64,000 nucleotides of DNA, taken from contig OU015569.1 of NCBI GenBank assembly GCA_907165135.1, positions 12,524,001 to 12,588,000 on the forward strand. The letters run 5' to 3'. The translations under genes and the position numbers were made by a program. The notes under the pieces were generated by a model. That model saw nothing but the letters and a program-made list of their open reading frames with translations, was not told the DNA's origin and searched no databases. Shown here piece by piece: positions 19,301-58,079 of the stretch. The first letter of the stretch is position 1, and each line of letters starts with the position of its first letter. This DNA is from Oikopleura dioica. Taxonomy: Eukaryota > Animalia > Chordata.

Positions 19301-22193
19301 AAATTAAAATGAAATTTTTCATGCCCACATTTATCTAGTTGGCTGGTATTAATACTGTAGAAATGCAAAGATAACCCTAAACCTAACCCTAACCCTAGCC
19401 CAAACCCCAATCAAGAATAGGATAAGAATTCTAAATTCTTATTGGCTGACAGACAAAATACCGCCTTCTTATTGGTGAAAATCCCCATGCACCATCTCCT
19501 AAAATCAGAGCCTTTTTCCTCTATTTTCTTATGAACAAGAACTCTTATCGACGAATTCTAGTCTGATGGAGTTATCAATGACTTGCCAATTGTTTTCGAA
19601 TTTGGTCTCTTGGCCCGACACCAGATGGGCGGCTGGGAAGTTACCGAAGATCAGAAGAAGGACGACTACTTTTCCTTTACTTTCCGAGTAAGTTAATTTG
19701 CAGAGTAAAATTGTTAAATGAAAATAATTCCAGTGGGACGAAGACAACGCCACGAAGGAACAAAAGGATGATCTCGAATCGCTCAGAATCAAAGCCACCT
19801 CGATCGTGATTCTTTACGACGAAGCGACCAACTCCATCGTTAATTTTGACGTTGAGCCCGGCTTCGAGCATCAGTGGGGTTATGGCCGACAGCGATTCTT
19901 GCAGCAGTCTGTTCTTCGAAGTAATTCAGCTCGCTCAAAACTAAGCTATAATTCTTGATTTCAGAAAACTCCCAAGCCGTCTTCGCCAAAGCAATCCTGA
20001 AAGACTGGTCGGAACAGCACGAATATGAGCTCGGCAAGTTGACCATTTCGCTGCTCAAGGACTCGAAGAATCAAAGATCTGACACTCTTGAGCTCGTTAA
20101 ACTGATCACCCAGATGGCCGAAAAAGAACAAGTGTGGCAAGAACAAAAGGTAATCTCAGTTTTATATTCTATTAGTGGTTGAGAGTTTTAACCTATTGGC
20201 GTAGTATTTTTAACACGTGTGTACGTTGGTTAACCCGTTTTCATTTCAGATCGAGGCCGAGAAGAACACACTTCTTTTGGAAAGTCAGATCCAGCAGCTC
20301 ACTCTTGAGCGAGACACCCTTAAGTTGCAGATGACTTCGCTGGAGACATCGCTGACTGCGATCAAGACCGAGCTCGCAACTCTCCAAGAAGAAGCAGCCC
20401 AGACTCCATGCGGCAACGACGGCATCAAGGGTGGCGATACTGGCTCCAACCAAATCCAGCCAGATTTGCAAAAGAAGGTTGACAAGCTCACAGAAGAGCT
20501 CGAAGCAGTCAAAGCCGCCAAGGAGGCCCAAGCCGCCGATCTTCAGTCCCAAATCGACGAGCTCACCAAGCAACTGGCCGCCAAAGACGCCGAAATCTGC
20601 GTCGCCAACGACAAACTCGCCGAGCTCCAAAACAAAATCGAAACCTTCGAGAGCCAGGTCGACACGCTCACCTGTCAAGTCAACGATCTCACCAAGAAAC
20701 TGGCCGACTGCGAGGGCGAAAAACAGAAGCTGTCCGATGTGCTTGATATTGTCGAGCAGAATGTGGCGACGCTCACGGCTCTTGTCGAAGAGCTCAAAAA
20801 AGGTAACTACAACATCATGGCTTTTAAAATTAACCATTTTTACAGAGAACGAAGCACTCAAAGCAGAGCTCGAAGCAGTCAAAAAAGCCGCCGAGGACGC
20901 CGCAGCCGCCGCTGCTGCCGAAAAGGCCGAGCTGGAATCAAAGGTGTGCACTCTTGAAGCGGAGCTGACAACTGCCAAAGAAGAAATCACTCGACAAGAG
21001 GCCGAAATCGCCAATTTAGATGGTAAGGCTTTATTCGCTGCTCGCCGCCGCTTTTTGAAAATGGCGCCATTTTCTAAACTAACTCTAACTCTGTTTTTTA
21101 TCAGGCATTGCTTACAAATATTGCGAAGACGCGAAAGCCCGCACCGACGATTTCAACCAGGCGGCGGCGCAATTGGCCTCGGCCAAGGAAGCGCAAGATG
21201 CTCAGAAGCTCGAGATCCAGAAAGCTATCGATATTCTCCAAGCCTGCCTTGTAAGAAAACTAACTTCCACTACCAAATAAACTAATTCGATCCCTATTTA
21301 CAGGCACAGCCTGATATCGCCGTCCCTTCTCCCGTCGAAAATAATGTTGATTGCACGCAATACAAGGATACTGTAGTACCACCGCCTCAGCCAGAGAAAA
21401 AGCCCGAGCCTGAGCCGGATGTAATTGTAGCTGAACCTGAGCCAGCCCCTGAGCCAGAACCAACTGTTGTTGAGGAGCCTAAGCAAGAAGCAGCCTGCTC
21501 GTCATCGTCTTCTTCTTCGTCTTCCTCCTCGTCATCGGACTCATCGGACAACGAATCTGTTGTTGATAATGGATATGTCGAGCCTCCAGGTAATTTAACC
21601 GCCGAACTATAAAATACCTGTAATATAAGCTGAGTTAGGGTTAGGGCTAGGCTCTAATTGGTAGGGTCAGGGTATTTAGTGACTTTCAACCAATCAGAGA
21701 CCAGATAGTCTCGGACACCCAATCAAATACCATATTTTCGTGATAGCGAATTAGCAACCTATTTTGGCCTTGATAGCCAATCACGTGCACCCATAAATAT
21801 CCCTATTGTTCAGTCCTTACTTTAGTTGATAAGGTCGTTGCTAAAGTCATTTAGTCGTCGATGAAGACATGATCATTGCCGAAAAAGTGAAAGATGCCCC
21901 AAAGCCACAGTTTTTCCCACCAAAAACGGAAGATAAAAACCCCGTCGTTCCAGAGCAACAGGCTGCTCAAAAGTCTCCACCAGCTTCACCGTAAGTTCGT
22001 CCAAGCTGTTCCTCTGATGATCACTCTTTTCAGGACTCAGGCGCAAAGCACGGAAATTCCCTTGGATCGACAATCGCTGAGCTCAGTGGGATCAAAGAAG
22101 AAGCAAAAGAAGCTCAACCCGGTCCTGCGAGCTCTCGGCTGCTTCGGCAAAAACTCGTGGGGGGAAAAAGACAAAACAGTTGCCAAGGATTAA
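16368..22193 (+). CDS. Multi-exon long coiled-coil protein with Pro/Glu- and Ser-rich tail, function unknown
   Basis: Exon 1 MAPSSKPKK|gtaag splices in phase to ttcag|a at 18296. Heptad-rich exons at 18296-18539 and 20250-21250; PEPE and poly-Ser segments at 21304-21589; ends ...GEKDKTVAKD*. Confidence 0.7.
16636..16863. mobile_element. CTGGG-family MITE
   Basis: ctaggctcggcaacctgtgt ... acacaggttgccgagcccag; flanks gttacctt / gttacccc; internal aagccgc/gcggctt palindromes. Confidence 0.85.
18042..18271. mobile_element. CTGGG-family MITE (diverged)
   Basis: ctggtctcggcaacctg ... caggtttccgaggccag; flanks ttttgaaa / ttttaaag. Confidence 0.8.
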
Positions 22194-23907: not shown

Positions 23908-25642
23908 TTGAAAAATTGAAATGAAAGAAAAGAACAGTAAAATGTTTCTAAAAGTGGAAGGGAATAATTTGAGGCTAACATTAAAGTAAAATTTTCAAGT
24001 AATGAAAGAAGGGAATGATTTTTATGGGCTCAAATGAGGGAGGATTGTTTAAGGGGAGTATTTTTTTCTTTGAGTTGAGTTGGGAAGAGAGGATACAGTA
24101 AAACAGGCCGTGTTTTCTTTTTACAGTCGAGGGTCATTTGATTAAAAAAAAGATGAAAACCGCTGGAATTTATTCAATTTAATCCTTGGCAACTGTTTTG
24201 TCTTTTTCTCCCCGCGAGTTTTTGCCGAAGCAGCCGAGAGCACGCAGGACCGGGTTGAGCTTCTTTTGCTTCTTCTTTGATCCCACTGAGCTCAGCGATT
24301 GTCGATCCAAGGGAATTTCCGTGCTTTGCACCTGAGTCCTGAAAAGAGTGATCATCAGAGGAACGGTCTGGCCGAACTTACGGTGAAGCTGGTGGAGACT
24401 TTTGAGTAGCCTGTTGCTCTGGAACGACGGGTGTTTTCTCTTCCGTTTTTGGTGGAAAAAATTGTGGCTTTGGGGCGTCCTTCACTTTTTCGGCAATGAT
24501 CATGTCTTCATCGACGACTAAAATGACTTTATCAACTACAGTCAGGACTCAACAACAGGGATATTCATGGATGCATGTGATTGGCTATCAGGGCCAAAAC
24601 AGGCTCCTGATTCGCTATCACGAAATATGATATGGTATTTGATTGGGTGTCCGAGACTATCTGGTCTCTGATTGGTTGAAAGGTCCCCAAATACCCTGAC
24701 CCTAACAGTTAGAGCCTAGTCCTAACTCAGCTTATATTATAGGTGTATTTTAAAGTTTGGCGTTTAAATTACCTGGAGGCTCGACATATCCATTATCAAC
24801 AACAGATTTGTTGTCCGATGAGTCCGATGACGAAGAGGAAGACGAAGAAGAAGACGATGACGAGCAGGCTGCTTCTTGCTTAGTATCGGCGATATCAGGC
24901 TGTGCCTGTAAATAGGGATCGAATTAGTTTATTTGGTAGTGGAAGTTAGTTTTCTTACAAGGCAGGCTTGGAGAATATCGATAGCTTTCTGGATCTCGAG
25001 CTTCTGAGCATCTTGCGCTTCCTTGGCCGAGGCCAATTGCGCCGCCGCCTGGTTGAAATCGTCGGTGCGGGCTTTCGCGTCTTCGCAATATTTGTAAGCA
25101 ATGCCTGATAAAAAACAGAGTTAGAGTTAGTTTAGAAAATGGCGCCATTTTCAAAAAGCGGCGGCGAGCAGCGAATAAAGCCTTACCATCTAAATTGGCG
25201 ATTTCGGCCTCTTGTCGAGTGATTTCTTCTTTGGCAGTTGTCAGCTCCGCTTCAAGAGTGCACACCTTTGATTCCAGCTCGGCCTTTTCGGCAGCAGCGG
25301 CGGCTGCGGCGTCCTCGGCGGCTTTTTTGACTGCTTCGAGCTCTGCTTTGAGTGCTTCGTTCTCTGTAAAAATGGTTAATTTTAAAAGCCATGATGTTGT
25401 AGTTACCTTTTTTGAGCTCTTCGACAAGAGCCGTGAGCGTCGCCACATTCTGCTCGACAATATCAAGCACATCGGACAGCTTCTGTTTTTCGCCCTCGCA
25501 GTCGGCCAGTTTCTTGGTGAGATCGTTGACTTGACAGGTGAGCGTGTCGACCTGGCTCTCGAAGGTTTCGATTTTGTTTTGGAGCTCGGCGAGTTTGTCG
25601 TTGGCGGCGCAGATTTCCGCTTCTTTGGCGGCCAGTTGCTTG
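23908..25642 (-). pseudogene. Inverted duplicate of the 3' half (20567-22470) of the coiled-coil gene
   Basis: The reverse complement matches exons, introns and 3' UTR. The ORF 24924-25472 translation equals part of ORF 20431-21285. The PEPE region is deleted in frame. Confidence 0.85.
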
Positions 25643-26259
25643 AGGGGATGGGTCTGGCTCTTGTGCTACAAAGGATTGAGAAATTATTTATTTAACCTTT
25701 AATAATATTACCTTGAAATCCGCGCGCCGAGTTGAATCGATCGACCCGCTGCTAAGGCTCCAATGGCTGTCTCCGGTTAGATCCATCTCATTCTCGTTCT
25801 CTTCTCTTTTTCTTCCAGAGAACAGTCCGCCCTCTCGGCGGTTTAGTCGGTCAATTCTAACTTCGGCAACAGTCCTCCGATTTTTCTTCTGCTTCGCCAT
25901 TATCGGCTGAAAAAACCGCAAATTAAATGATTTGCAATTTTCTAAAATCGAAAAGCCGCTTGCGGCTTCGAGATACAACTTGGCCCGGCAACTTGTGTAG
26001 AAAACCATAGTCAGGAATCTAAGGAGCTCTCATAAAAAGCCGCGCAGCGGCTTTTACCAAATATTTGAATATTGTTGAAGCAGCAAAATCCCCCAAGAAA
26101 TTCTAATTGCTTTTAAAAAATATCTCTGCTCTTACCTTTTTGCACGCAGGAATGCGAATGAAGTCGGTTTGAACGCGCGGTGCTCAGCACAACAAGAGCA
26201 CCATCTGGTTTTGACGTGGCAGAGTCAAATCAGCGCGCGATCAAAAAATTTTTTTCGTT

Positions 26260-28495: not shown

Positions 28496-29623
28496 TTGAA
28501 CCGCTTTTTAGATGCTCCAAATCCAAACGGATTATACGCCCACCGCTATCCACGAATGGATGAAGGTTACTACCGCCGTCTAGCGTCCTTCAACAACTAT
28601 CCCTCCAACACCAACATGACGAAAGAAGAACTAGCCTGGGCAGGCTTCGTCTGGACCGGGCGCAACGACGAGGTCCGCTGCGAATATTGCTCCGTTGTTT
28701 TAGCACAGTGGCAAATTCACGATGTGGCGTTTTCCGAACACTGTCGGGTCAGTCCAGACTGCCCTTTTATTCTTCCCAGACGATCACAGTAAGTTACACT
28801 GAATAAAGATTTTGTTTGCGGTTCTTCAACAATTTATCAACCTTACCTAACAGAAAAATCATTTTTTGAACTCTTCTTTTCAGGCCAAACACGCCGGATA
28901 AAAGATTTTTATACGATCGCCGGATCAGCTTCAACAACTGGACTCGCGCTCATCCACTGCCTTCCGAGCTAGCCGACGCTGGCTTCTTTTACACTGGCGA
29001 ATCCGACCACGTGAAATGCTTCCACTGCGACTTGGTGCTCCACTCGTGGGAACCGACTGGAATGCCCTGGCACGCGCATGCCCGCTTCAGCCCCTTCTGC
29101 GCCTACGTCATCGTCGAAAAGGGCATCGACTGGATTCGCAGCGTCTGCAACATGGACGCCAGTCAGTACAGAAATCGCTTTCTCGCCATTTTGGCCGAGT
29201 CGGCAAATGATCCAATGTCCGTCCAAGCCGCGGAAGATATTCTTGCTAATTTAACGGACGATGACGACTCGCTATTTGGCGACGTTGGAATGCCAACAGG
29301 TCATTTTTCGACTGAATAACAAAAAAAAAATTACAAAAATATTGATTTCAGGTCCAGTTGGAATCCCGATATCAGAAGAACTGCGTGGCCGACCTCCCGA
29401 GCCAGTAAAAGACGTAGACGATGTTCCAGACGACAAGCTCCGCCAGGTTCTATCGGAGCAACTGTCTTCCCAAAGCTGCAAAGTATGCCTGACGAATCGC
29501 GCCACAGTGGTGATTCTTCCTTGCTCGCACTTGGTCAGCTGCCCCAGCTGCATAAAGAAACTGCGAGACTGTCCCTTGTGCCGGGCACAAGCGGAAAGAG
29601 CGCTAGAAATATTCATCACTTGA
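28496..29623 (+). CDS. Inhibitor of apoptosis protein (2 BIR domains + C-terminal RING)
   Basis: BIR1 RLASF..LAWAGF..DEVRCEYC..W..EH..SPDC; BIR2 LADAGF..DHVKCFHC..W..HARFSPFC; RING CKVC..ILPCSHLVSCPSC..CPLCR. Introns at ~28789-28884 and ~29300-29351. Confidence 0.92.
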
Positions 29624-29875
29624 AGAAGAAGAAGAAGACAAAATCTATCTGTAATAATTTGCTGCTGCTGTAAATTTTGAAAACTGCTCATAACTGAAAA
29701 TGAAAACTAAACTTCAAAAAATTGCAAGTTTCTTATCACTTTTTTGTGCATTTTTCTTGTTTAAATTTATTGCAGCTTTCTTCGTAGCTAGTTCAGGAGA
29801 AAACAGGTCGAATGTTCAGAATTGCAAAAAGTTGCTAGACAGAAATTGAAGTAAAGAAAAGAGTTCTAGGGGGAA

Positions 29876-48800: not shown

Positions 48801-51800
48801 GCTGTTAGTTTTCACTTAAATTATACTCGATGGGTGAAGGAAATGAATAGGTTTCCGACCGAAACCGACCAACCCGACCGTCAACCGTTCAATATCCGAC
48901 CAAGACCGACCAAAAACCGACCATCGACCGACCATACCCGACCACCGACCAAACAAAGAACAAAAATCACAGGTTGAGTTGGTCGATACCCAAATCAACC
49001 CGACCAAACCCGACCAGGTCGGGTTTTGGTCGGTGGTCGGTGCCGACCCTAGTTTTCTTATTAAAATTATATAACAAAATCTAGGTCAATTTTAGGCTAT
49101 TTATTTATATCAAATTTCAGAAGAGACACTTCAAAATAAATCGAATCAAAAAAAGTCTCTTCTAATAAAAATCTTAGCAAACACGGTATACATATTAATA
49201 ATAATGCTTATAATCTGAGAAAAATACATTTTGTTGAAATTATTAAAATCAAACTAGATGTTATTTTGGCTATATATTTATATGAAATTTTAAAAGAGAC
49301 GTTTATAAATATATCTAGTCAAAAAAACGTCTCTTCTAAGAAAAATACTATAAAGTTAGCGTTTCTTATTTTCGGTGCCCAGATTAGATTCTAGACTAAA
49401 AATTGTTGATTTTCAAAAAATTTTTGAAATTGGGAGCAAATTGGGAGCTCCCAATTTACTCCCAGCCCTGAAAACCTGTGCTCCTGCTCCCTCCGTGCTC
49501 CCAAAAAAGGGAGCTCCCTTTGGGAGCTCCCAATTTTACTCCCATAGATTTCGAACTCTGTCATCCCTTTCCCCGGGAGGGAGCAGCTTCAATTATGCAT
49601 TCTCTTTGACAAGAATGAACAACTAAGAGCGAAAGCAACCGGTTGTACTAGCAACTTTAGGGGTTGCAAATGTCATTCAGTAGGTAGACTTTACTCTTAG
49701 TTAGGATCGTGACACCCTTATTTTCTACTAACATTTTTACCATCGAAAATTGATAAGAGGATTTGAACCTTATTTTGACGAGATGAAATAAGGGTGTCAC
49801 TATTTTAAATCCAAAAGAAAAGTCGCCTAAAGGAAAGAAACCTTAATTCATCTTATCAAAGTAAAGGCTAAATCCTTTTATCTAGTTTCGATGATAAAAG
49901 CAAGAGTAAAAATAAGGGTCTTACATAATTTGTTAACTCTTGGATAAAATACTGTGTAAATATGGACGAGAATGGAGTTTGACGTCATCTACAACTTATG
50001 GCAAGTAGGCCGATTTTAAAAAGAAATGAAACTCACCGGAGAAAGACTTTGAAAGAGCGGAGAGTAAGAGGTGAATTCAACCGTTTTTACGAAAAAACGC
50101 TCGGAGCAGTAAACACCAGACGTCTTGATCGATATATAGATGGTTGCGCCCGTCTCGTCAAATGTCCGAAAAATTCTCTTGAAGCTGAATTTGTGCTCTC
50201 TGATTTTTTCAGCTGCGGAATCAGAAAGAGGAGACCCAACGCCCCACTTCTCCAAGATTAGCACAACAACAGAGCTTTGCCAAATCGAAAAATCAGAATA
50301 ACGCAACTCAGAAGAAAGTACCGAGCTTTCCAGAAAAGGTTCTTTATATAGAAAAGTACCTTTCTATATAATTTTCTTCAATAAAAAAGTGTAGTTCCAA
50401 GTTGCGCGGCGCCGCGCTGCTATTTCCCTTATATGAGAAAATATTGAATACGACCGACCCACGAGGTAGAAAGTAAACGAACCATTTCGACAAGGTGAAA
50501 ATTATGCCTGACAGAGTAATATCTCGCCTTTATTCTTCTCGGTTATATATCGCTCTGACGCGGACTAGCCATCAGAGATTGATACTTTTTCATCCCTTTC
50601 TTTTGTTTCAGAAATAAATTTCAAATATAGTTTCATCAAAGAGCATTGAATCAAATTGTATATAAAACTTTGGATTCAACAACTAAATAGACATTTCCGT
50701 GACTGTTAATTTCCGCAATGTGCTGATTTCCCACGCTGCCGGAAATCGACATTCCCGGAAAACAGCATTGCTGGAAATCAGGATTGAGGCAACAGAACTG
50801 ACGGATAAATAGAGAAATAGAATGAGGTCAATAAAAATAATTTTAAGATAGAATTTCAGATGAAAAAAGGTTTCATGGGTCGAACCAAAAGCGGGGTCCA
50901 TGCTTTTCTGAGCCACTTCTGTATTTAGACTATTTTGACATATTTTGATGCAAAACAAGGATTTCAAGAACGACCCAAAATCGCTGTCGCTTATTTTTTT
51001 TATTCCAACTTGGCATTTTGAATTTGCGAAAACGAACCAACCTAATACAAACTTCTTCGCCCTTTTCAATGTCCCTCGTTGCGACAACAGAGAGTTTGTG
51101 ATTGTCGTGCAGGAATTTGATTTCAGCGTTTGGCTCGCAATCGTGGTTCAGCATTGCTTGCTTCGAGTACAGTCCCACACCCTCGTTGTCCATGAATTCG
51201 ATGCCGCAGCTTTCCTCGCACACGTCGTACAGTTCATCCACGAAGGCGTCATCGTCATGTGCTTGTATCTGAAGAGAAGTGTAAATACACACCCATTTGC
51301 ATGTGACACAGTCTTTAGACGCATCATATGATCGAGAGGTAACTCCAAGAAACTTTAGACAAGTCATTAATAAAATTTGGGTGGCCCAGGTTCAGCAACC
51401 TGTGTAGAAGCCTGAGTCAGGGTCCTCAAAGAGCTTCAATCTGCAGCTTTTTTCAAAAGGAAGCCGCGACGCCAAAATTAGCACCTCAATCGATCTTTTT
51501 TGACTCCTCAGGACCCTGACTCAGGCTTCTTGATAGGTAGCCGAGCGCTGAGAGTGCCACTTAATTTCAAGAGAAAAACAGTTGTTGACCTCTACCCCTG
51601 AATCCGACTCTTCCTTCTGAACTCACCCATCTGATAATGGCAGAGGTGCCAAGCCCCTGCTGGTTCCGCCCGCAGAGGAGAAATGCCCATCTCACTTCTT
51701 CTTCCGTCAGTCCTTCGAAAATCTTCGCCAGCCCTGTCGTCAGCAAACTTATCGTCGTTTCAAACTTTCCGTCCAACATCTTGTGAACAATCTGGTCTTC

Positions 51801-54800
51801 TTTCGGCGAAGCAACTTGAGTTTCGAGATCAGTGGCAAATTCAAATAGTATGCTTTCAACAAACCTGTATAAATAGAAATATGAATTTTATATAGCATTG
51901 ACTCGAAATATCAAGTGCTCTTGTTAATCAACTTTTCTAGTGAAAATAGGGTTAGGTTAGAGGTAAAGTTAGTCTTAGAATTAATAATATTTTGTTGACA
52001 ACATGGAGGACTAAGGCCCTTAGTCTAATGGTGTCTAAAGGTACATTTTCAATGCTAGAAAAGTGGGTTAAAACAGCGCTATCTATATTTTCATAACTCA
52101 CTACTTACCAAATGTTTCAAATTTCTCGGCCATGGAAGGATCCAAGTAGCGCATGGCTAAGATCTTCATGACAATCATGACGCTTGACTCTTCCGGGGAA
52201 AATTCATGTCTCTCCACAAATCCTCTACTTCTTCTACTGCCTCCCAGTTCGCTAAAGAACTTAAGTTTTGTAAAGGAAGATGAAGGGGTTCTTACGAAGC
52301 AATAAGCGCATGTAATCGTAATCTGCTTTCTTGAGACATGTTTCCGAACAGTATAACACTCCTGTTTTCGGGCATGCGACCGGACTGGGCTTTTCGTATT
52401 CGTTCGTCGTCCAGCTGTTCTCAGGAAGAGAGATGATCTGTCCTTGCGTTAGCCTGGCAATGCACTGGTCCGGCTCTTCAAGCGGATACATACAGTGGAA
52501 ACAGCAACTGTAGCCGAGTTTACGGCCCCAACTTTCCAATTGGCTAGTCATCAATATTTAGGCTTACCGCGGTGTTTTCTATTTCGCAGGTTCTTTTGAA
52601 AAATCTCCCCATACTTTCAGAACATATGCATCAAGACAAGCCTTGAAAAACTGCACTTGCAGAATTTTCGATATGAGTCATCTTACCTCTTTTTTGGGGA
52701 ATTTTTAGCGAGAAAAAAGCACTAGTTTTATTAGAAGCGGCTTTTGAGTGCGTGCTAGATGGATTTTGATAATTTGATGCCTACCATGTGAAAGATAAGC
52801 GCAAGATGCATCGATACATATGAAATTTATTATTGCGGAGTGCTTCCTTCATATGATTCTAGAGCTCCAAAGTTGACGCAAGCAGCCAGATACGAAAATC
52901 CAATATTATCAACTTCTGATATAAGCATGCTATGATGATGTTTTATAGCTCAAATTGAAGCTTATTAATTACTGAACAAAATGGGGTGGTATTTTTGACC
53001 AGCCGGTTGTGCTTCCGGTTCGTCGCGGTTCTTGCCCGGAAATAGGTTAAAATGTAGGAATATGTATATCAAATGAATTCATTTTCAACAGCGAATCTTT
53101 TACATATTCAGAAGTTCAACCGCCTGGTTATTCTTGCGGTTCATGGTGGTTCATGGTGGTTCAAGCGCAGAAATGAACAAAATAGCAGCAATATGTATAT
53201 CAAATTGAAACTTGTAATAAGTTCATTCATAAAATCATTGAATAAGCCCGAACCAACCGGTGACTCTCGCGGTAAATAGCGGTTCCAGACGGTTCAAGCC
53301 GGTTGAAGCTAAAAACATGCTCAAAGTGGTTCAATATGGTTATCAAATGAATTCATTTACAATAGCGAGTCTTTCTAACACGTTATGAAATTCAACCGCC
53401 TGGTTATTCTTGCGGTTCATGGTGGTTCAAGCGCAGAAATGAACAAAATAGCAGCAATATGTATATCAAATTGAAACTTGTAATAAGTTCATTCATAAAA
53501 TCATTGAATAAGCCCGAACCAACCGGTTACTCTCGCGGTAAATAGCGGTTCCAGACGGTTCAAGCCGGTTGAAGCTAAAAACATGCTCAAAGTGGTTCAA
53601 TATGGTTATCAAATGAATTCATTTACAAAAGCGAGTCTTTCTAACACGTTATGAAATTCAACCGCCTGGTTATTCTTGCGGTTCATGGTGGTTCATGGTG
53701 GTTCAAGCCAACAAATAAACAAATAGCATCAATATGTATATCAAATTGAATCTTGTATTAAATACATTCGTACAATCATCAGGCCTGTTTATACAATTCA
53801 GTCTGAGACGGGGCAAAGCCGACCCGAAGGGGAGGCCAGGCCCGTTTATACAATTCAGTCTGAGACTGGGCCAAGCCGATCCGAAGGAGAGGCCAGGCCC
53901 GTTTATACAATTAAGTCGGCGACGGGGCCAAGCCGACCCGAAGGGGAGGCCAGGCCCATTAATCCAATTCAGTCTGGGACGGGGCCAAGCCGATCCGAAG
54001 GGGAGGCCAGGCCCGTTTATACAATTCAGTCTGCGACGGAGCGAAGCCGACCCGAAGGGGAGGCCAGGCCCGTTTATACAATTCAGTCTGAGACGGGGCA
54101 AAGCCGACCCGAAGGGGAGGCCAGGCCCGTTTATACAATTCAGTCTGCGACGGGGCGAAGCCGACCCGAAGGAAGGCCAGGCCCGTTTATGCAATTCAGT
54201 CTGAGACGGGGCCAAGCCGACCCGAAGGGGAGGCCAGGCCCGTTTATACAATTCAGTCTGAGACGGGGCCAAGCCGACCCGAAGGGGAGGCCAGGCCCGT
54301 TTATACAATTCAGTCTGCGACGGGGCGAAGCCGACCCGAAGGGAGGCCAGGCCCGTTTATACAATTCAGTCTGCGACGGGGCGAAGCCGACCCGAAGGGA
54401 AGGCCAGGCCCGTTTATACAATTCAGTCGGCGACGGGGCGAAGCCGACCCGAAGGGGAGGCCAGGCCCGTTTATGCAATTCAGTCTGCGACGGGGCGAAG
54501 CCGACCCGAAGGGGAGCCCAGGCCCGTTTATACAATTCAGTCTGAGACGGGGCCAAGCCGACCCGAAGGGGAGACCAGGCCCGTTTATACAAAACAGCCT
54601 GAGACGGGGCCAAGCCGACCCGAAGGGGAGGCCAGGCCCGTTTATACAATTCAGTCTGCGACGGGGCGAAGCCGACCCGAAGGGGAGGCCAGGCCCGTTT
54701 ATACAATTCAGTCTGCGACGGGGCGAAGCCGACCCGAAGGGAAGGCCAGGCCCGTTTATACAATTCAGTCTGCGACGGGGCGAAGCCGACCCGAAGGGAG

Positions 54801-57800
54801 GCCAGGCCCGTTTATGCAATTCAGTCTGCGACGGGGCGAAGCCGACCCGAAGGGGAGCCCAGGCCCGTTTATACAATTCAGTCTGAGACGGGGCCAAGCC
54901 GACCCGAAGGGAGACCAGGCCCGTTTATACAAAACAGCCTGAGACGGGGCCAAGCCGACCCGAAGGGAGGCCAGGCCCGTTTATACAATTCAGTCTGTGA
55001 CGGGGCGAAGCCGACCCGAAGGGGAGGCAAGGCCCGTTAATGCAATTCAGTCTGTGACGGGGCCAAGCCGATCCGAAGGGGAGGCCAGGCCCGTTTATGC
55101 AATTCAGTCTGAGTAGATGCGAAGCCGACCCGACTTGGCTACGTCGTAGACCAAATTGCATAACGGGCCTGGCCTCCCCTTCGGGTCGGCTTTGCCCCGT
55201 TTCAAACTGAATTGTATAAACGGGCCTGGCCTTCCCTTCGGGTCTGCTTGGCCCCGTCGCAGACTGAATCGTATAAACGGGCCTGGCCTATCTTCGGGTC
55301 GGCTTCGCCCCGTCGATGACTGAATTGTATAAACGGGCCTGGCCTCCCTTCGGGTCGGCTTGGCCCCGTCTCAGGCGGTTTTGTATAAACGGGCCTGGCC
55401 TTCCCTTCGGGTCGGCTTGGCCCTGTCTCAGACTGAATTGTATAAACGGGCCTGGCCTCCCTTCGGGTCGGCTTGGCCCTGTCTCAGACTGAATTGTATA
55501 AACGGGCCTGGCCTCCCCTTCGGGTGTGCTTTGCCCCGTCTCAGACTGAATTGTATAAACGGGCCTGGCCTACCCTTCGGGTCGGCTTGGCCCCGTCTCA
55601 GACTGAATTGTATTAACGGGCCTGGCCTCCCCTTCGTGTCGGCTTGGCCACGTCTCAGACTGAATTGTATAAACGGGCCTGGCCTCCCCTTCGGGTCGGC
55701 TTGGCCCTGTCTCAGGCTGTTTTGTATAAACGGGCCTGGCCTCCCTTCGGGTCGGCTTGGCCCCATCTCAGACTGAATTGTATAAACGGGCCTGGCCTTC
55801 CCTTCGGGTCGGCTTGGCCCTGTCTCAGACTGAATTGTATAAACGGCCTGGCCTCCCCTTCGGGTCGGCTTGGCCCCGTCTCAGACTGAATTGCATAAAC
55901 GGGCCTGGCCTTCCCTTCGGGTCGGCTTCGCCCCGTCTCAGACTGAATTGTATAAACGGGCCTGGCCTTCCCTTCGGGTCGGCTTGGCCCTGTCTCAGGC
56001 TGTTTTGTATAAACGGGCCTGGCCTCCCTTCGGGTCGGCTTGGCCCCATCTCAGACTGAATTGTATAAACGGGCCTGGCCTTCCCTTCGGGTCGGCTTGG
56101 CCCTGTCTCAGGCTGTTTTGTATAAACGGGCCTGGCCTCCCCTTCGGGTCGGCTTTGCCCCGTTTCAAACTGAATTGTATTAACGGGCCTGGCCTTCCCT
56201 TCGGGTCGGCTTGGCCCTGTCTCAGGCTGTTTTGTATAAACGGGCCTGGCCTCCCCTTCGGGTCGGCTTGGCCCCATCTCAGACTGAATTGTATAAACGG
56301 GCCTGGCCTTCCCTTCGGGTCGGCTTGGCCCTGTCTCAGACTGAATTGTATAAACGGGCCTGGCCTCCCCTTCGGGTCGGCTTGGCCCCGTCTCAGACTG
56401 AATTGCATAAACGGGCCTGGCCTTCCTTCGGGTCGGCTTCGCCCCGTCTCAGACTGAATTGTATAAACGGGCCTGGCCTTCCCTTCGGGTCGGCTTGGCC
56501 CTGTCTCAGGCTGTTTTGTATAAACGGGCCTGGCCTCCCCTTCGGATCGGCTTTGCCCCGTCTCAGACTGAATTGTATAAACAGGCCTGATGATTGTACG
56601 AATGTATTTAATACAAGATTCAATTTGATATACATATTGATGCTATTTGTTTATTTGTTGGCTTGAACCACCATGAACCACCATGAACCGCAAGAATAAC
56701 CAGGCGGTTGAATTTCATAACGTGTTAGAAAGACTCGCTTTTGTAAATGAATTCATTTGATAACCATATTGAACCACTTTGAGCATGTTTTTAGCTTCAA
56801 CCGGCTTGAACCGTCTGGAACCGCTATTTACCGCGAGAGTAACCGGTTGGTTCGGGCTTATTCAATGATTTTATGAATGAACTTATTACAAGTTTCAATT
56901 TGATATACATATTGCTGCTATTTTGTTCATTTCTGCGCTTGAACCACCATGAACCGCAAGAATAACCAGGCGGTTGAATTTCATAACGTGTTAGAAAGAC
57001 TCGCTATTGTAAATGAATTCATTTGATAACCATATTGAACCACTTTGAGCATGTTTTTAGCTTCAACCGGCTTGAACCGTCTGGAACCGCTATTTACCGC
57101 GAGAGTCACCGGTTGGTTCGGGCTTATTCAATGATTTTATGAATGAACTTATTACAAGTTTCAATTTGATATACATATTGCTGCTATTTTGTTCATTTCT
57201 GCGCTTGAACCACCATGAACCACCATGAACCGCAAGAATAACCAGGCGGTTGAACTTCTGAATATGTAAAAAAGATTCGCTGTTGAAAATGAATTCATTT
57301 GATATACATATTCCTACATTTTAACCTATTTCCGGGCAAGAACCGCGACGAACCGGAAGCACAACCGGCTGGTCAAAAAATACCACCCCATTTTGTTCAG
57401 TAATTAATAAGCTTCAATTTGAGCTATAAAACATCATCATAGCATGCTTATATCAGAAGTTGATAATATTGGATTTTCGTATCTGGCTGCTTGCGTCAAC
57501 TTTGGAGCTCTAGAATCATATGAAGGAAGCACTCCGCAATAATAAATTTCATATGTATCGATGCATCTTGCGCTTATCTTTCACATGGTAGGCATCAAAT
57601 TATCAAAATCCATCTAGCACGCACTCAAAAGCCGCTTCTAATAAAACTAGTGCTTTTTTTCTCGCTAAAAATTCCCCAAAAAAAGAGGTAAGATGACTCA
57701 TATCGAAAATTCTGCAAGTGCAGTTTTTCAAGGCTTGTCTTGATGCATATGTTCTGAAAGTATGGGGAGATTTTTCAAAAGAACCTTGAAAATCGAAAAA

Positions 57801-58079
57801 CACCGCGGTAAGCCTATCAATATTACACTTTCGGCAACGAAAATCAGGACTGTAGGGAATAAAACATAAAATACTGAAATAAATCCTTCATGAATCGAGT
57901 TGAAATTCTTATGAAAGCAAATGAATAGTGAATCGGTAAGTGAGTGTTTAAATTTAACGAGGCCAAATCCTGAATTGCGCTGAGCAAATTGGCTCTTCTT
58001 CAAGCAGCACTTTTCCTTCCTTGTGGTCCTCGGTGGCGATCATTCCTCGCCCCTTCTCCGGAATGTTTACGACTTCCAT
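45857..58079 (-). CDS. SMYD5: SET and MYND domain lysine methyltransferase with two very large introns (~46209-51040 and 52532-57969)
   Basis: KGRGMIA..EEEPICSAQF|SW..YSCCFHCMYPLE, GRNQQGLGTS, FMDNEGVGLYSKQAMLNHDCEPNA, GEEVCI|SYLD..R..RQEQLSVNYLFHCGCEMC, Glu-rich tail. Confidence 0.9.
48305..49560. mobile_element. hAT-like non-autonomous transposon (1256 bp) with GGGAGC/GCTCCC subterminal repeats
   Basis: TIR cagagttcgaaat / atttcgaactctg; perfect TSD tcatccct (48297-48304 and 49561-49568). Confidence 0.92.
48621..49052. mobile_element. Nested MITE (432 bp) with GGTCG/CGACC repeats
   Basis: TIR ctagggtcggcaccgaccacc / ggtggtcggtgccgaccctag; perfect TSD ttttctta (48613-48620 and 49053-49060). 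Confidence 0.92.
53060..53770 (+). repeat. ~265-275 bp tandem repeat (about 2.6 copies), left arm; mirrored at ~56600-57310
   Basis: tatcaaatgaattcattt recurs at ~53067, 53342 and 53607. Confidence 0.85.
53781..55132 (+). repeat. 57-bp satellite array, left arm (~24 units)
   Basis: Unit cccgaaggggaggccaggcccgtttatacaattcagtctgagacggggccaagccga. Confidence 0.95.
55154..56588 (-). repeat. 57-bp satellite array, right arm, inverted (~25 units)
   Basis: Reverse complement of the same unit, with a different order of variants. Confidence 0.95.

Follow-up and report, generated by a model that had tools for sequence, protein, structure and literature searches.

Introduction

Foldback transposons with internal satellites are already known, as in Galileo, Tetris and Muta1, and such layouts have been reported mainly in the Mutator and P superfamilies. 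Galileo, which belongs to the P superfamily and is found in Drosophila, has non-autonomous copies that consist of two terminal inverted repeats (TIRs), which are up to 4.2-4.7 kb long and contain tandem repeats; the TIRs of one copy are 98-100% alike and growth by repair and conversion has been proposed (PMC4168063, PMC3573991). Unlike the family described below, Galileo has mostly 7-bp target-site duplications (TSDs), the target consensus GTANTAC and a known P transposase, and the accounts consulted mention no fixed one-base asymmetry of the ends. Tetris, from Drosophila virilis and assigned to Mutator, is an ORF-less foldback element whose tandem-repeat TIRs feed satellite arrays and for which no autonomous copy was found, but its TSDs vary from 8 to 10 bp (PMC4079207). 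Muta1, a MULE of Aedes aegypti, shows that animals can have foldback-type ends with subterminal repeats and a hairpin formed on the flanking DNA; it is, however, autonomous, has a terminal motif starting with GGG and is excised mostly precisely (PMC5499845). The hAT elements (the Ac, Buster and Tip groups, and Hermes) combine an 8-bp TSD with flank hairpins and a need for unequal left and right ends, whereas their TIRs are 10-25 bp and not kilobases long, and the targets of the Ac and Buster groups are nTnnnnAn and nnnTAnnn, respectively, not nnnATnnn (10.1101/2022.09.16.508221; PMC3942097).

The genome of the chordate Oikopleura dioica is strongly scrambled, with cut-and-paste elements suspected as sources of rearrangement (PMC11067885), and 44% of its repeats are unclassified (PMC8008620). 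A literature search of incomplete coverage, with repeat databases lying outside it, found no foldback element described in Oikopleura or Ciona. Here we describe an element from a 64,000-nucleotide stretch of O. dioica DNA (the window) and the family to which it belongs, which is real, young and probably undescribed. The best reading, and one that we consider probable, is a non-autonomous cut-and-paste transposon that has a foldback layout and is mobilised in trans by a transposase of hAT type. A hAT-type case would be a third origin of this layout.

Structure of the element

The element is mirror-symmetric and occupies positions 52559-57816 of the window (5,258 bp). It begins with TAGG at 52559, ends with CCTA at 57816 and is flanked by a perfect 8-bp TSD, tcaatatt, with a central AT (52551-52558 and 57817-57824, plus strand). 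Each arm consists of an outer domain of ~500 bp, a 266-bp repeat present 2.6 times and a 57-bp array. In the left arm (plus strand), the terminus (52559-52592) comprises a 14-nt core TIR followed by an asymmetric zone of the 'short' type, with an ATTT motif at nt 23. The left outer domain (52559-53058), which matches subfamily-1 copies at 92-99% and the other subfamilies at ~70%, is followed by the 266-bp tandem block (53059-53779, 2.6 copies) and the satellite array (53780-55133, 23.8 copies). The arrays meet at a copy-specific junction (55134-55153), beyond which the inverted right arm (minus strand) contains a satellite array with its own order of variants (55154-56589, 25.3 copies), a 266-bp tandem block (56590-57312, 2.6 copies) and the right outer domain and terminus (57313-57816), the latter of the 'long' type with its ATTT motif at nt 24. 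The TSD, the TAGG termini and the three-part arms of the original prediction were borne out by these re-measured coordinates.

Aligned from nt 35 to the satellite (1,193 columns), the two arms have no substitutions between them and 5 gap columns, and the ends mismatch each other at nt ~21-29. The left and right satellite arrays are not mirror images, with mostly 1-7 differences per unit in register; the window element is therefore no chimera of a fold-back read. All the features of foldback-type TIRs are present (long inverted arms, an outer domain, internal tandem repeats, a variable middle and a TSD), as are those of a non-autonomous DNA transposon (dispersed copies, distinct TSDs, an absence of coding capacity and an empty site). 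The element had been said to lack a transposase ORF; in an ORF scan of other family copies, the long ORFs translate satellite only.

Satellite and centre

The satellite period is constant at 57 across copies, whose arms contain arrays of 0 to 61 units each. All nine consensus units share an invariant 23-nt core, with the qualification that 12 of its letters are the search anchor. The unit folds modestly, and does so on just one of its strands (z about -2.2 to -2.5). Among the best 150 of 524 satellite matches, all but one (C3:2636537) are located within copies of the family or on the downstream side of one of its termini. The idea that the element carries and spreads a satellite is thus upheld as to carriage by the family copies, but free arrays did not emerge, the satellite being seen within family copies only. 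In this the 57-mer differs from the Tetris repeat, which also forms satellite-like arrays of kilobase size (PMC4079207). Two subfamily-3 copies carry a subfamily-1-like satellite, which suggests possible exchange between copies.

The array junction differs from copy to copy. The 11-nt micro-palindrome ctacg-t-cgtag, to which the original prediction drew attention, is present at 55139-55149 but is absent from every other copy, and the central hairpin was rejected as a functional part, the centres differing in nearly every copy. A 0.8-kb centre in copy L047 was considered as a transposase remnant and rejected as well, since it turned out to be a fragment of a different dispersed repeat and to lack any useful ORF.

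Two copies contain nested fragments of other dispersed repeats, in the centre or in an arm (L047:5760-6490 and L044:1475-2460). At L040:1800-9967 (G000:C4 from about 14503050) a lone left arm abuts a very uniform tandem array with units of ~70 bp; this array is near the contig end and the right arm is missing.

Copies and target sites

A search of the assembly (64,281,565 bases in 19 contigs) with the outer domain returned 44 matches. Eighteen two-ended copies (the window element and 17 others of 581-7,829 bp) and three single-ended copies were read; terminus and satellite searches add several loci, giving a family total of about 25. The copies fall into four subfamilies whose outer domains are about 70% alike.

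Perfect and distinct 8-bp TSDs flank 16 of the 18 two-ended copies, and a 9-bp reading is possible in only 2 copies. All 16 TSDs follow the pattern nnnATnnn, the frequency of a central AT in the flanks being 0.081, and the same pattern is found beside all three single-ended copies. Neither the Ac-group target nTnnnnAn nor the Buster-group target nnnTAnnn occurs among them (0/16 for each); these are the published preferences of the two groups, that of Tip being left open (PMC3942097). No transposon paper reporting an nnnATnnn rule was found in a literature search of incomplete coverage. The family has therefore inserted repeatedly and independently, with 8-bp duplications centred on AT. Within copies, the arms have been kept alike, the satellite has changed in length and the centre has been deleted at varying points.

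Three copies interrupt coding exons. L031 lies in a caspase-like gene and its removal restores an open frame of 341 codons; L041 lies in a DEAD-box/PWI helicase gene and its removal restores an open frame of 407 codons; L033 (G000:C5:8127916-8134107) lies in a copy of RPB1. That L033 had struck the only RPB1 was considered and rejected, as a 99% identical RPB1 stretch, either an uncollapsed allele or a duplication, is present 6.9 kb upstream. Splicing of the element out of exons as a clean intron was also considered but is not supported: the arithmetic scar of 15 nt would introduce the terminal TAG as an in-frame stop at 2 of the 3 exonic sites. A further RPB1 paralogue (63%) is present elsewhere on the contig of L033. 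At L046:5924-6963 the right terminus and its flank are duplicated in tandem, about 1 kb downstream.

Polymorphism at the insertion site

Four sequencing runs (X1-X4) were assembled around the right junction only. Run X3, which comes from another study, contains a contig in which the two flanks are linked through a single copy of tcaatatt, which is the empty site that the original prediction had asked for. In run X2 a contig begins at the TSD and continues for 44 non-element letters; this is probably an empty site too. Contig 8 of run X1 leaves the flank and covers 12 nt of the adjoining element end, showing 0 differences but falling below the 31-letter standard for bridging; this run is perhaps from the source animal. 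Run X4 behaved as low-depth DNA, and none of the four runs behaved as RNA. Other flanks attached to element ends in the runs, which are mixed consensus strings, match none of the family loci read, and this suggests more insertion sites. The claim of recent mobility is supported by the presence/absence polymorphism at the window site together with the distinct TSDs at other copies. The flank of L043 (G000:C3:2039946), a truncated copy on a Y-sized contig, is among the loose ends of runs X2 and X4, and L043 is therefore older and shared.

The palindrome could in principle have been produced by the assembly or by Nanopore fold-back reads, and neither the array lengths nor the homopolymers are certain, the assembly being from long reads. 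Such an artefact is, however, extremely improbable given the distinct TSDs at 16 copies, the non-mirrored satellite arrays and the pairing of an empty-site contig with a junction contig.

Arm similarity and unequal ends

In a 445-nt test region (nt 46-490) the window arms are identical to each other and differ at 11-19 sites from other full subfamily-1 copies, with L032 at 8. In a tree of 32 arms, 12 of the 16 copies have their two arms as sisters, the others being unresolved in the youngest clade. Minor alleles of subfamily 1 occur 34 times on both arms of a copy and 20 times on one arm. The homogenisation of arms suspected from the window element is therefore found across the family, as seen in the within-copy sisters and in the 0 substitutions between the window arms, although assembly from Nanopore reads could add to the likeness of the arms.

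The mismatch at nt ~21-29, which had been noted for the window element, is real but is not peculiar to that copy. A conserved motif, ATTT...RGBTCT, is at nt 23 of one end and nt 24 of the other in 18/18 copies, making this a family-wide left/right asymmetry, and it has been held across four subfamilies despite differing spacer letters. Both T-run lengths occur in the run contigs. For this asymmetry the number of independent events is four lineages, not 18 copies.

Selection for unequal ends appears to us the likelier account. In Hermes, most activity is lost with two left ends and all activity with two right ends (10.1101/2022.09.16.508221). Alternatively, the asymmetry may be an inherited relic without function, arm conversion simply fading out near the tips; its passive persistence is conceivable if a one-base bulge close to the base of the stem is rarely passed by conversion. 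This is a plausible reading, if a less probable one, and fits the clustering of end-type-fixed sites at nt 15-37, where a heteroduplex would be short, as well as the small number of independent lineages (four). On the other hand, nt 8 and 13-16 carry letters that were altered jointly at both ends within each subfamily, conversion tracts from the inside reach nt 28-33 (L038, L046 and the window copy), that is as far as nt 28, and the length difference has been kept although the spacer letters were replaced. If selection does maintain the unequal ends, the family is a natural experiment that narrows transposon end asymmetry to one base.

At both ends, and in all four subfamilies, the subterminal motif (a T-run, then AG|GT) looks like a splice acceptor that faces inward (in the window, 52559-52592 and 57783-57816).

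Cleavage chemistry and transposase class

The two copies with imperfect TSDs, L034 and L037, have target-site palindromes with a one-base centre and 7-8-bp arms directly at the element end, which would fit the expected trace of an opened flank hairpin. Flank hairpins are made by hAT, Transib, RAG and MULE enzymes and not by those of Tc1/mariner or piggyBac (PMC5499845). With these scars taken into account the 8-bp TSD usual in hAT elements is found throughout, 16/18 being perfect and the other two explained by the palindromes. The TIRs depart from the short hAT form (10-25 bp), as the perfect core is 14-20 nt but the arms extend for kilobases. The TAG start fits hAT termini. A hAT-type transposase acting in trans is the best guess because signs of flank hairpins, a strict 8-bp TSD and a TAG start come together here, and MULEs would be the main rival source.

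The hAT dimerisation domain (PF05699) has 10 matches in the genome, 0/10 of which are within 10 kb of a family terminus, and terminus and domain searches found no transposase gene with family termini near those termini. The autonomous hAT element sharing the TIR that the original prediction expected was thus not found near family termini, all PF05699 matches being more than 10 kb away. Searches with PF14291 and PF21787 gave no match, their controls also being blank, and a metagenome scan for a transposase partner gave one chance match. The 8-bp TSD and the cleavage chemistry are compatible with a candidate hAT-type assignment; the target is unlike those of Ac and Buster. Several hAT dimerisation matches have near-identical scores and form tandem and inverted pairs (G000:C4:380299 and 393172; C1:636914-737685).

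A Mutator/Foldback (MULE) family like Muta1, Tetris or FB, in which long, internally repeated arms are the native layout, is unlikely but deserves weight, as most foldback elements have been assigned to Mutator and Tetris combines 8-10-bp TSDs with satellite-bearing TIRs (PMC4079207), while Muta1 makes flank hairpins and needs subterminal repeats (PMC5499845). Against it, the central AT is strict, the TSD is 8 bp in 16/16 copies vs 8 to 10 in Tetris, and the family termini are TAG vs the GGG of Muta1. Typical values for MULEs are TSDs of 9-11 bp (8 in some families) and termini starting with G; the strict 8 bp and TAG start lie outside them. P transposases are not known to use flank-hairpin chemistry, to which the flank palindromes point, and a P-superfamily foldback element like Galileo is accordingly a poor candidate. 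It would account for long TIRs that contain tandem repeats, for non-autonomous copies made of two TIRs, for the extension of one TIR by repair from the other and for a TSD of 7 or 8 bp, all of which are described for Galileo (PMC4168063, PMC3573991), yet the Galileo target consensus is the 7-bp GTANTAC. The blank PF21787 search also speaks against P, if weakly, its control being blank too.

Under the favoured hAT-type reading, the family would have originated from a hAT element that lost its gene, the interior of one end then being copied to the other side via repair or arm-arm conversion. Conversion would have kept the arms identical and yet never have erased the one-base difference in spacing close to the tips, the likeliest reason being that the transposase requires a left end paired with a right end. 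Cleavage would form hairpins on the flanking DNA and leave the palindromic scars at two copies; the satellite would be cargo, perhaps also providing binding sites, and the host gene a bystander. More tentatively, the family may represent an uncharacterised hAT lineage with a near-absolute nnnATnnn rule and a 23/24 one-base code that is required for jumping and has survived homogenisation of kilobase arms.

The retention of the 23/24 asymmetry and the strictness of the AT target give precise rules, open to testing, for how ends are recognised and targets chosen. The family is young and polymorphic, inserts into exons and forms palindromes of several kilobases; it is therefore a concrete candidate source of the rearrangements in this genome and, if the more tentative reading above is correct, would be a still-active mutagen in a compact chordate genome.

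Host gene and neighbouring features

The element lies in a predicted intron of a gene on the minus strand. SET pieces and a Cys-rich exon were recognised by Pfam and Atlas, searched exon by exon. The first coding exon (57970-58079) contains the start of a SET domain as a weak match (Pfam SET, E 0.14); the start of exon 2 and its open frame (52264-52531) encode a Cys-rich insert; and a downstream exon (51086-51310) encodes the C-terminal part of SET (E 0.0036, the single match in the assembly). The gene is probably histone-methyltransferase-like and, by resemblance of motifs, a candidate SMYD5. The predicted GA-AG intron (52532-57969), placed from the reading frame, is 5,438 nt with the element and 172 nt without it. 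Removal of the element and one TSD copy gives, as originally described, a 172-nt GA...AG intron with the element 27 nt from the acceptor, and the reading frame continues into exon 2 across this element-free intron. GA-AG introns are common in O. dioica (PMC7072748) and the median intron is 49 nt (PMC8008620).

We infer that the window lies on an X-specific region, one whose read depth in the only male sequenced is half that of the autosomes. The male was hemizygous, and therefore the insertion did not prevent survival to sampling.

Fold-back of the pre-mRNA, with the element being skipped, is possible, and may yield the long dsRNA that the original prediction proposed. The element may instead be spliced in as a poison exon, which we consider rather unlikely. 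Transcription on the gene strand reaches a putative AAG|G acceptor-like site at element nt 32 in the right terminus (57785), which would give a 185-nt GA-AG intron, and a putative GTAAG donor-like site (52563-52567, minus strand) is present 36 nt before the exon-2 acceptor; in all frames a stop would be reached after no more than 59 codons. Transcription of the first arm precedes that of its partner by about 5 kb, and the 49-nt median intron also favours such trapping. Against this, 36 nt is short, both putative sites would be placed within the terminal stem or next to it after folding of the RNA, and the hemizygous carrier male survived until it was sequenced, which fits tolerance of loss or correct splicing. 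With this hemizygous intronic copy it can be tested cleanly whether a spliceosome adapted to short introns skips or traps an RNA hairpin of 5 kb.

Two inverted-repeat pairs (51392-51544 and 49701-49808; 35 and 23 nt), possibly small MITEs, are present nearby, the first within the host gene region. Elsewhere in the window, near-identical coiled-coil-like open frames in opposite orientation (20214-21282 and 24927-25692) form a local inverted duplication, and open frames at 28870-29706 resemble, as judged by eye, the BIR domain and RING finger of an IAP-like gene.
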